64,000 nt of DNA, taken from Dimorphilus gyrociliatus (lineage: Eukaryota; Animalia; Annelida). The DNA lies in NCBI GenBank assembly GCA_904063045.1, contig CAJFCJ010000005.1, positions 1,813,988 to 1,877,987 on the forward strand, given 5' to 3'. The notes beneath the pieces are model-generated. The model was not told the DNA's origin and made no database searches. It was given only the letters and a program-made list of their open reading frames with translations. This document shows, piece by piece, positions 33,922 to 37,846 of this stretch; the first letter of the stretch is position 1; each line of letters opens with the position of its first letter. Both the position numbers and the translations under genes were made by a program.

Positions 33922-34279
33922 CTCTGCAGCGTCTCTTTTACGGTGTTGCACAGTCGATAGTGACGCTGCAAATATGGCGGCACTTTTCCCACGCCATCTG
34001 CCGTAGAGAGGAAATAAGAAGAAGTGATTGACCTTAATTGACGTGTGTTGTCGTGCACTTACAGGGAAATGCGCAACATGTTGGTGTTTAATAGGGCCGT
34101 TTAATAAGAATAAGGGTCATATATTTTAAATAGTTAAAGGTTGTTTAGAATTATTTATCCATGCATGAAAAAAAATGTAATGAAGAAGAAAATAGCACCA
34201 GTGTATTAGTAACAAACTTGGCTATACAGTAATATTGCATAACGATATTGTATATATGATCAAGGTGAATATATATGCT

Positions 34280-34318
<39 letters not shown>

Positions 34319-34683
34319 CATATATTACAAAACATCTTTGTAATAGTCTACAGTATCCACAGCAAGATACATTTAATCCATGCATGCACATGCTTCCTCT
34401 ATACGATTAAAGTACAAAAATAACTTGTATTGCATACAGGTAAAAAGCCATCAGATCACATATACATATAATATATAAATATACATATATACCGTATATA
34501 CTAATATATATATATATTTCATATGTTTTGGCTATAAAAAAAAGAATACATATGTCACTTATTAATTTAAACATTCCTTTTTGATTAATTCTAATATATA
34601 CATGGTAAAATTTATAAATATTCATACATTTTGTGTATTTTTTACTTATAGCAGAGTGAGGCTTTTGCAGTTGCCACCATTAA

Positions 34684-36197
34684 TTACCTAAAAAAGCTGG
34701 AAGTGGGAAGGAAAAAGGTTGCGATCTTAGTCAATAAACGAATATAGATATCAATGTAGAAATCTAGAGCGGGTATTAATCTAACTGGTGTCATAGCAGC
34801 GTGAGCAAGACTATGGCTAGATATTTCAGCGTAGCATGACGACCAAAAACCATCCACTATTAGGCTACCATCCCCGGTTAATGGTGCACTATATCCGTTG
34901 ATCAATCGAAAAGTTATCGAAACTACTCTTCGTGTTCCATTAAACGTGAATAACTTATCACCAATAGTAACGTCTCTTGCAAAAATGGCACCTTTTTCGA
35001 CCGTATAGATTAAATGATTTTCCGTTAACGATATTTTCCAACCGTCTTCTAATCCAATTTCCTTGTAAACTGTGGTAGAATTAGCGTTATAGTGCAGATA
35101 AGTCAGGAATCTGGTTTCGATTAAATGGCCATCTGAACTTAGAGTTAATAAGATGTCACCCCTCGCCAACTTTCCAATCTGCTTTTGTCGTCCAGATGCC
35201 GTTAGTACTGTTGAAGTTGGTGGAAAGCATCCAAATGATGTTAACGATGCTGCCGAATCTGTTAACAAAAAGATATTTGTAACAAAAGCGTTTGTAATTT
35301 AATTAATTTATTAGACTCTACGACATTTACCAGGCTTACAGGAGCAATGAATATGATATCTTGATTCATAATAGACCCAATCGAAACCTGATAGTACGGC
35401 TAATCTTGCCAGCATTCCGTATTTCGAACGGTCTCTATCAGACGTTGTTAAATCGACCGCTCGCCCCTCGTAGTGTAATGAATCTTCTTCGTGCTGGTTG
35501 TCTTCGTCGAAGGCCTCTATAACCCTCAGCCGGACGCCTTCCCATTCGTTAGCCACCATTATGGATAGGCTGACTAATTTGTCTTTGCATCTCTGTATCA
35601 GGGAATATTTTTACCGCGATTAGAAATCAAACACTCAAATTCGCCCTCTGGCTCTTTTTCGAGAGTAAAACAATACTCTCTTTTTTCGTTTTATCTACAT
35701 AAAAAAAACGTAATACAGAGAAAAAGTGGAAGAAGAAGGAGAGAAAAAGAGAAAAAAGAAAGGTGCGTTTGTTGTCATCCTGTTGCTGCTATCCTGTTCT
35801 TTCCTCTCTTATTATTTTCTATTACACATTCTCTCTTCTTCCTTTTCAATAATAAAATTTCGTTTTAAATGTGGTGTTCATTTTTTTTATATACCTGAGA
35901 CATCAGCCTGTCAGCTCCTGTACCTTCGTTATCCTTAAATAGTATATCACTACTTTTGTCCACATAGGCGAGTTGATTAAATTTCGGACTATCACGTCTA
36001 ATTTTACCGGAAAACTTTCCACTAGCGGCCACCGATTGTTCCGGGTAGTTTGGTACGTGTTGTTTAATAACGAGGGGCATTAATTTCTTCCATTTGCGTC
36101 TTTCGTAGTAGTTCTTTCCATGCAAACAACACTCCGATAATAAAACGACGGTCGATAACAAAAGTAGACTTTGCAGTATCCGACAATAGTTTCCCAT
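34684..36197 (-). CDS. hh: Hedgehog precursor, 3 exons (36197-35895, 35592-35331, 35258-34684)
   Basis: Signal peptide; [15 protein letters not shown]; [15 protein letters not shown]|RCKDKL; [43 protein letters not shown]; GCF cleavage site; LTENH; SCYA. Conserved hedgehog intron positions. Confidence 0.97.
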
Positions 36198-37846
36198 ATA
36201 AATAAACAATATATACATCTGTATATATGTATATACATATATATGTATATATATGTATATTAATATATATATACATTCGTATATAATATTTAGAAATTTT
36301 ATGATATGCTCCTCAAGGCATTACTAAAAAACAATAAAAAAAAGGCAAAACCAGCCTTGTCACTCTGCTCACGTTTATAAAATTGTAATAAAACTCTTTG
36401 CCTTTAAATCTGGCCATTGGAGAATAAAGGAACCAATCAGCGTTCACATGTAATAATTTGCATAATGATTTATACTGGCGCCGAAAAGCTTCTAAAAAAA
36501 AATAACCATCAATGCCTTTTTAATTTCAGTAATGACTGATTTAACACTTTCATATCCTTTTCTTCTTTTTTTGCTATCAATTGCTGCCAACTTGGAACAA
36601 ACTATTTTTTTAAAGATAAAGGAATATATTTTTTACCTTCTGCCTTTTTAAATATAATAAAAAAAAGCCTATACCATAAAAAGAACTACTTAAAAATTCT
36701 ATTGTCTCCCTTATCTTTCCTTTATCATTTGTTGTCTTTTACGTCTTTTAATTATATATAATTATATAGATGTACAAATTGTCAACTTTTTTTATAAAAA
36801 TTTGAATAGGAAAAGAACTAACTCGTTTACTGAACGACCATTTGACCCATTCAAAAACTGCATTCAAGCGCCATTAAACGGCTTAAATGAGAATTTTAAG
36901 CGACGGCTTCCCTTTCATCTGCCGGACAATAGTCAGCATAGAATGATTAATGCAAATATTTTCCTAATAGAAGCAATATTTATCATCGCATTACAATCTC
37001 ACTTTATTGAGGACGGTATTAGGGGCCAACAATAGAGCAGATGCACCGCAAAGGGAATATAGTTGATGATTAAAAAGTCGTTCTAATACAAGATAAAATT
37101 CAATGTTTTAAGTACTTTATAACAAATTGAAATGAAAAAGAGATTTACGTCAGCCTACCTCCCAATATTGCACAAAATAAACCACTATACTGTATATGTT
37201 AAAATACATTTCGACCCTCATCTGTCTTTGCCCCAGAAAACATCTTGAAGTGGTTCACCTTTCAAATATTCAAGTCGTTAGAGAATCTATTTTACGGCCT
37301 ATGATAAATCATTTGAAAATTACTCTTAAGCGTTTGTTTCACCACCTTCACGTTCTGTTATCTATGTGCAACTATAAGAGTTTTATAAGAATTCTCTTTT
37401 TAATTTAAGAAAAGAATGGGTTGCTCTATATACTAATATTATATAAATACACATATACAATATATATTGTAAATATGATTGCAAAAGTATGTTTCTTGAA
37501 CGATATTTGAGTGTAATATTTACCAAACTAATTTTTACTTTGTACAGCTCATTAGATTTTATAAATAACTAAATATACACTCTCTAGTCTTTAAAAAAAG
37601 GGTTATTGAATTATTTCATTGTTCACTCATATACGGTCGTATACCCCCAAAGAAAGTCGTTGCCATAGGCGATAAACGTTAAAAGTTTGAGCAGGTGGCG
37701 CATCTGGCGAATTTTTAACATTAGCACTTATAAGCCTAACTTCCCAAGGGTTTTATAATAATGCACAAAAAGTTAGTATTACGTCTTTATGGATTCTTTA
37801 AATTAGATTCATTAAAAATTATTCCATGTTTATTTTTACTCCAAAG

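Follow-up and report, generated by a model that had tools for sequence, protein, structure and literature searches.

Hedgehog autoprocessing begins with a thioester between Cys1 and the glycine before it, assisted by the TxxH motif; residue 46 then removes the proton from the 3-beta hydroxyl of cholesterol, and the sterol displaces the thioester (PMC9163320, PMC4695875, PMC13738340). Replacing the aspartate at this position with alanine (D46A) abolishes cholesterolysis, the second of the two steps (PMC13738340), and position 46 is thus critical to the reaction. The residue is referred to in the literature as "a conserved aspartate."

Zhao et al. reportedly engineered the corresponding histidine variant of the Drosophila HhC domain in 2019 (D46H, or D303H in the numbering of the full protein; PDB 6TYY) and measured its kinetics. 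The substitution left the structure unchanged (rmsd of 0.4 Å), with the same pKa and a similar catalytic efficiency toward cholesterol (PMC9163320), and it raised the catalytic efficiency more than 200-fold for coprostanol and more than 300-fold for epicoprostanol (PMC9163320, PMC8529194). Human SHH with D46H autoprocesses in 293T cells (PMC12054796). An earlier note on the DNA analyzed here had stated that engineered D46H stays active and tolerates more sterols, and these three sources confirm it. A statement about a natural His46 was not found in the literature that we searched; the primary D46H paper lay outside that search, and a prior description is possible.

Structure and transcription of the Dimorphilus gene

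The window, a 64,000-nucleotide stretch of the Dimorphilus gyrociliatus genome on contig C5, contains a complete three-exon hedgehog gene on its minus strand (approximately 34530-36218; about 386 codons by arithmetic). Its features are as follows.

35895-36218, minus strand: coding part of exon 1, with the start, putative signal peptide and N-terminal Cys, and first half of HhN, ending in ...LMSQ before a GT donor (open reading frame; transcript joint 35592/35895)
35593-35894, minus strand: intron 1, 302 nt, GT..AG, low-complexity and AG/CT-rich (joints in X2 and X3 contigs)
35331-35592, minus strand: exon 2, 262 nt, second half of HhN (RCKDKL...CSCKP; both borders from transcript joints)
35259-35330, minus strand: intron 2, 72 nt, GT..AG (joint in 999-nt X2 and X3 contigs, the shorter flank being 255 letters long)
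34684-35258, minus strand: coding part of exon 3 and stop, with the end of HhN, the GCF site, Hint, and the sterol-recognition region (Pfam Hint; alignment to Drosophila Hh 247-428, the chain of PDB 6TD6; transcripts)
35227-35229, minus strand: Cys1 codon (TGC) of the GCF autoprocessing site (direct read; Cys in 220/220 aligned hedgehogs)
35092-35094, minus strand: His46 codon (CAC) at the general-base position, Drosophila D303 (direct read, HMMER, transcripts, orthologue)
35014-35025, minus strand: TxxH motif, T69-E-N-H72 (direct read; the alignment has T/S and H throughout)
34834-34836, minus strand: second catalytic Cys (SCYA), residue 132, equivalent of Drosophila C143 (direct read; 224/224)
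34687-34827, minus strand: short sterol-recognition region, 47 residues after SCYA (alignment and orthologue conservation)
34530-34683, minus strand: 3' untranslated region, at least this far (X2 and X3 contigs reach 34530)

Each exon was searched against profiles and proteins separately rather than as one joined protein. The HH_signal domain of Pfam (PF01085) was matched in exon 1 (open stretch 35865-36218, profile positions 1-81, E = 8.9e-22) and in exon 2 (open stretch 35311-35559, profile positions 90-161, E = 3.5e-39), each time well beyond the cutoff, and Hint (PF01079) was matched in the open stretch 34684-35268 (E = 1.7e-36). In the open reading frame of exon 1, a hydrophobic leader precedes the HhN match and may be a signal peptide ahead of the N-terminal Cys, the palmitoylation site of hedgehogs; the CGPGR motif is diverged here (C-LHGKN). 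The autoprocessing site at the HhN/HhC junction reads SFGCFPP. In the sterol-recognition region, HMMER aligned the first helix to residues 403-428 of Drosophila Hh and 363-386 of SHH, and the whole stretch, including its hydrophobic tail, is conserved in P0002, the orthologue from a related worm. At the level of sequence, the gene has the marks of the hedgehog family from HH_signal and the GCF site to Hint and the sterol-recognition region, and its product is predicted to cleave itself. The earlier note had taken it for a bona fide hedgehog, and that view held: HH_signal falls on exons 1 and 2 and Hint on exon 3, with GCF, TxxH, and SCYA intact. A pseudogene is ruled out by the open frame, the correct splicing, and the presence of all catalytic residues.

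Exon 1 belongs to the gene, since transcript contigs from X2 and X3 join 35895 to 35592. The deposited model DgyrCDS3554 (P0001, 267 amino acids) is identical to the gene in the window over the part that it covers; it begins at an internal methionine of exon 2 (MVANEW...) and so comes without exon 1 and without 11 codons at the head of exon 2. Compared with this truncated model, the real gene has one more exon upstream. X2 and X3 also contained a second RNA form (window 35566-35924), in which 35593-35840 of intron 1 was retained and only 35841-35893 was removed (53 nt in one run and 82 nt in the other). This form probably reflects an alternative acceptor or partly processed RNA.

The codon at 35092-35094 reads GTG on the plus strand and hence CAC, histidine, on the minus strand. 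Counting from the Cys codon of GCF, it is codon 46 without a gap, and T69 (35023-35025) and H72 (35014-35016) of LTENH match the Drosophila numbering exactly. HMMER placed FLTYLHYN opposite ILFMDRN of Drosophila Hh (D303) and FLTFLDRD of human SHH, and in the alignment to the engineered D46H chain of PDB 6TYY (ILFMHRN) the two histidines stand opposite each other. Direct reading and HMMER thus both agree with the gap-free register from the GCF Cys through FLTYLH, and with the intact LTENH and SCYA, that the earlier note had described.

Spliced transcript contigs of X2 and X3, two runs from two studies, cover 34530-35258 including codon 46 with 0 differing letters, as 999-nt assembled contigs from which rare variants drop out. 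The earlier note had called for a check of the codon in raw reads, and these assembled contigs read CAC, not GAC. The orthologue of the related worm (genomic contig L013) also has CAC at codon 46, with synonymous differences in the neighboring codons. Together with the paralog described below, these observations bear out a natural histidine at the Asp46 position.

Two other data sets touched the locus. In X12, a DNA run from 2024 labeled as the same species, contigs over window positions 34000-37000 were changed wholesale, either C>T at 173 places or G>A at 226, as is typical of libraries made by bisulfite or enzymatic conversion; because conversion is nearly complete across the gene body of the hedgehog, little or no cytosine methylation is suggested there. 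In the marine metatranscriptome X6, a 215-nt contig matched the 3' end of the gene (34609-34811) with 2 differences, and that sample therefore contained D. gyrociliatus or a strain very close to it.

Hog domains in the genome and distribution of His46

Six loci in the 77.9-Mb D. gyrociliatus assembly carry Hint above the Pfam cutoff, and a seventh match is weak and below the threshold. One of the six is a second complete hedgehog (G000:C12:151327-152707; L006, L008, L010), with HH_signal in two pieces followed by Hint. It reads FLTFLHFS and therefore has His46 too. This paralog shares the three-part layout of the gene in the window but is about 51% identical to it in the Hog part and keeps a canonical N-terminal motif, CGSGRR. 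It is sister to the gene in the window with full support in the tree of 121 sequences described below, and on this evidence the two hedgehogs are lineage-specific paralogs. A duplicated hedgehog in a miniature genome is notable against the single Hh found in the spiralians covered by a 2022 survey of the annelid Hh pathway (PMC9695228).

The other four loci are intronless fusions of a PG_binding/matrixin metalloproteinase to Hog, three in tandem at G000:C24:672133-676551 (L001-L003) and one at G000:C2:4477261-4477767 (L004). They have the same Hog autoprocessing module as the gene in the window, whereas their cargo is a matrixin protease instead of HhN. The equivalent of position 46 is aspartate in the three C24 copies and histidine in the C2 copy. 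Both residues thus coexist in the Hog domains of one animal.

The related-worm contig L013 has the same three-part layout as the window. Its called Hint fragment (P0002, 161 amino acids) is 83% identical in protein, and its 161 codons show 34 synonymous versus 26 nonsynonymous differences.

We surveyed position 46 in two aligned sets from word-based searches, the best 120 of about 1,240 matches to P0001 and the best 120 of about 1,750 matches to the Capitella protein P0005, which together gave 212 representatives. In the first set (best 120 of about 1,240), 23 sequences had histidine and 97 had aspartate. In the combined 212 (best 120 of each list), aspartate was found in 185 and histidine in 27, with no third residue. 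At the general-base position, the gene in the window thus has the sole alternative to aspartate that the survey contained. C1, H72, and the second Cys (C143) were invariant in the alignment (C1 in 220/220, H72 across 224 homologues, and the second Cys in 224/224). His46 is accordingly a common natural alternative, present in roughly 1 in 8 of the hedgehog sequences surveyed (about 13%, a figure that is approximate because only the best 120 of about 1,240 and of about 1,750 matches were included).

Among spiralians, His46 is carried by the Hh of the annelid Capitella teleta (P0005) and of the brachiopod Novocrania anomala (P0147); Capitella and Owenia were the only named annelids among the listed matches, despite the Capitella query. 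Arthropod carriers comprise the ladybirds Harmonia axyridis (Hh, P0134) and Coccinella septempunctata, the psyllid Diaphorina citri, the copepod Lepeophtheirus salmonis, the centipede Strigamia maritima (P0044), and the spider Stegodyphus dumicola. In vertebrates, His46 occurs in the majority of anuran Desert hedgehogs (Dhh), those of twelve frogs, both Xenopus species included (Xenopus laevis Dhh-A is P0041). It is present in pipids, pelobatoids, and neobatrachians (among P0020-P0097), and Ascaphus, Bombina, and Discoglossus have Asp46 (P0037, P0050, P0069). The Asp46 frogs are nested among the His46 frogs in the protein tree, a pattern that fits one switch or more.

The rarity of His46 implied in the earlier note was not upheld, as the 27 carriers among the 212 representatives include insects, a spider, a myriapod, and a crustacean as well as a brachiopod and an annelid. 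That note had itself named frequent His46 in canonical protostome hedgehogs as grounds for refutation; the residue is indeed common there, and the note's finding as posed is refuted. A residue unique to Dimorphilus is likewise ruled out by the survey.

Asp (GAY) and His (CAY) codons are one base apart. A maximum-likelihood tree of the 121 sequences required 6 Asp/His changes, of which well-supported branches force 5 or more; shuffling the Asp/His labels on the same tree gave a mean of 22 changes. A rougher FastTree of 213 rows gave 9-11 changes, with or without the column for position 46. On these trees, His46 arose several times independently across Bilateria, and Asp46 and His46 behave as interchangeable states that toggle repeatedly.

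The D. gyrociliatus genes fall in a His-only group of the 121-sequence tree together with three further sequences. The His46 sequences P0026, P0054, P0106, and P0210 cluster with Capitella and D. gyrociliatus. Capitella, itself His46, joins the His-only group and an Asp-only group, composed of the annelid Owenia, nemerteans, and molluscs, at one unresolved fork. From this topology, a single Asp/His switch inside Annelida is plausible.

Role of His46

The gene in the window is an ordinary, transcribed D. gyrociliatus hedgehog that is very probably functional, with His46 predicted to work as a general base in the manner of Asp46. Its Hog domain has all the catalytic residues that autoprocessing needs. 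His46 would activate the 3-hydroxyl of a sterol, which would attack the Cys1 thioester, and the signaling domain would be released with the sterol on its C-terminal glycine. We infer that natural His46 acts as the general base and that the adduct would be cholesterol or the main sterol of the worm. The data on engineered D46H and the occurrence in nature of only aspartate or histidine at this position make a working general base the best reading. Some functional drift of this paralog may have taken place, given the 47-residue sterol-recognition region and the diverged CGPGR-like motif (C-LHGKN).

An adaptation that lets the hedgehog take different or broader sterols, for example 5-beta stanols or annelid-specific sterols, is unlikely in our estimation. 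The gains of engineered D303H on coprostanol and epicoprostanol (PMC9163320, PMC8529194) speak for it, as do the retention of His46 in both paralogs, one metalloproteinase-Hog fusion, and a relative, and the clustering of spiralian His46 sequences, which would fit a lineage-wide trait. However, His46 spans animals with very different sterol biology, from sterol-auxotrophic arthropods to sterol-synthesizing frogs and a brachiopod; in frogs it is confined to Dhh, one of three paralogs; and three metalloproteinase-Hog domains of the same worm keep aspartate. Moreover, broader tolerance in vitro does not equal a changed adduct in vivo, where the prevailing sterols are of the cholesterol-like 3-beta type. 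The scattered distribution of His46 resembles a nearly neutral alternation between two bases that both work, and His46 is likeliest not a special adaptation. A different sterol adduct on natural His46 hedgehogs is at present speculation.

The opposite reading, that His46 disables cholesterolysis and leaves this paralog uncleaved, limited to hydrolysis, or decaying, is highly improbable. The loss of cholesterolysis in D46A (PMC13738340) would be in line with it, as would the diverged N-terminal motif and the short sterol-recognition region, but D46H, in contrast to D46A, keeps full activity both in vitro and in cells (PMC9163320, PMC12054796). The frame, too, is open, the gene is transcribed and correctly spliced, the remaining catalytic residues are all intact, and the orthologue shows more synonymous than nonsynonymous changes with the histidine unchanged. 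Still closer to nil is the chance that the codon stems from faulty sequencing or assembly, or from an uncommon allele in the strain that was sequenced. We found no point in favor of this, and against it stand the identical letters in X2 and X3 contigs, CAC in a diverged relative, and His46 in the second paralog; within what assembled contigs can show, an error is ruled out by the contigs of two studies, the diverged orthologue, and the paralog.

The import for the window itself is small: its hedgehog is a normal one, and the variant that it carries is common. The outcome is a new, ordinary member of the family and a modestly useful census of position 46. The strict Asp-or-His pattern is of some mild use for work on autoprocessing, where D46 is described as conserved, and lends evolutionary support to an acid-base role that either side chain can fill. 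Natural cases such as frog Desert hedgehog are test cases for how the base swap relates to sterol choice, and an in vitro SHhC assay exists in Xenopus (PMC13738340). It is unlikely that natural His46 Hog domains take a wider range of sterols in vivo than Asp46 enzymes do. Such a range would concern both D. gyrociliatus hedgehogs, one metalloproteinase-Hog fusion, an apparently annelid-centered cluster, frog Dhh, and others; some natural hedgehog ligands would then carry sterols other than cholesterol, and the recurrent switches between Asp and His would follow shifts in the sterols that a lineage or tissue contains.

Comparison with known hedgehogs

Measured against canonical Hedgehog, as in Drosophila Hh and human SHH, the Dimorphilus protein has the same HhN, GCF site, C1, T69xxH72, second Cys, and sterol-recognition region, with a hydrophobic leader as putative signal peptide, and the gene has the same three-exon structure with a middle exon of 262 nt. 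It differs by histidine in place of aspartate at Hint position 46, by shorter Hint loops that put the second Cys at 132 rather than 143, by a sterol-recognition region of only 47 residues, and by its diverged N-terminal CGPGR motif.

The engineered Drosophila D46H enzyme has the same residue at the same aligned position, but it was made in the laboratory by point mutation of an Asp46 enzyme, whereas the Dimorphilus His46 is natural, sits in a different background, and is known from sequence. The nearest counterparts in nature are the His46 hedgehogs of Capitella, Novocrania, Xenopus (Dhh-A), Harmonia, and Strigamia, which combine HH_signal, Hint, and His46 as Dimorphilus does. They belong to other lineages, most of which acquired the residue through independent switches, and the position that follows sets most of them apart: it is tyrosine or phenylalanine in the D. 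gyrociliatus genes but arginine or lysine in most other His46 hedgehogs.
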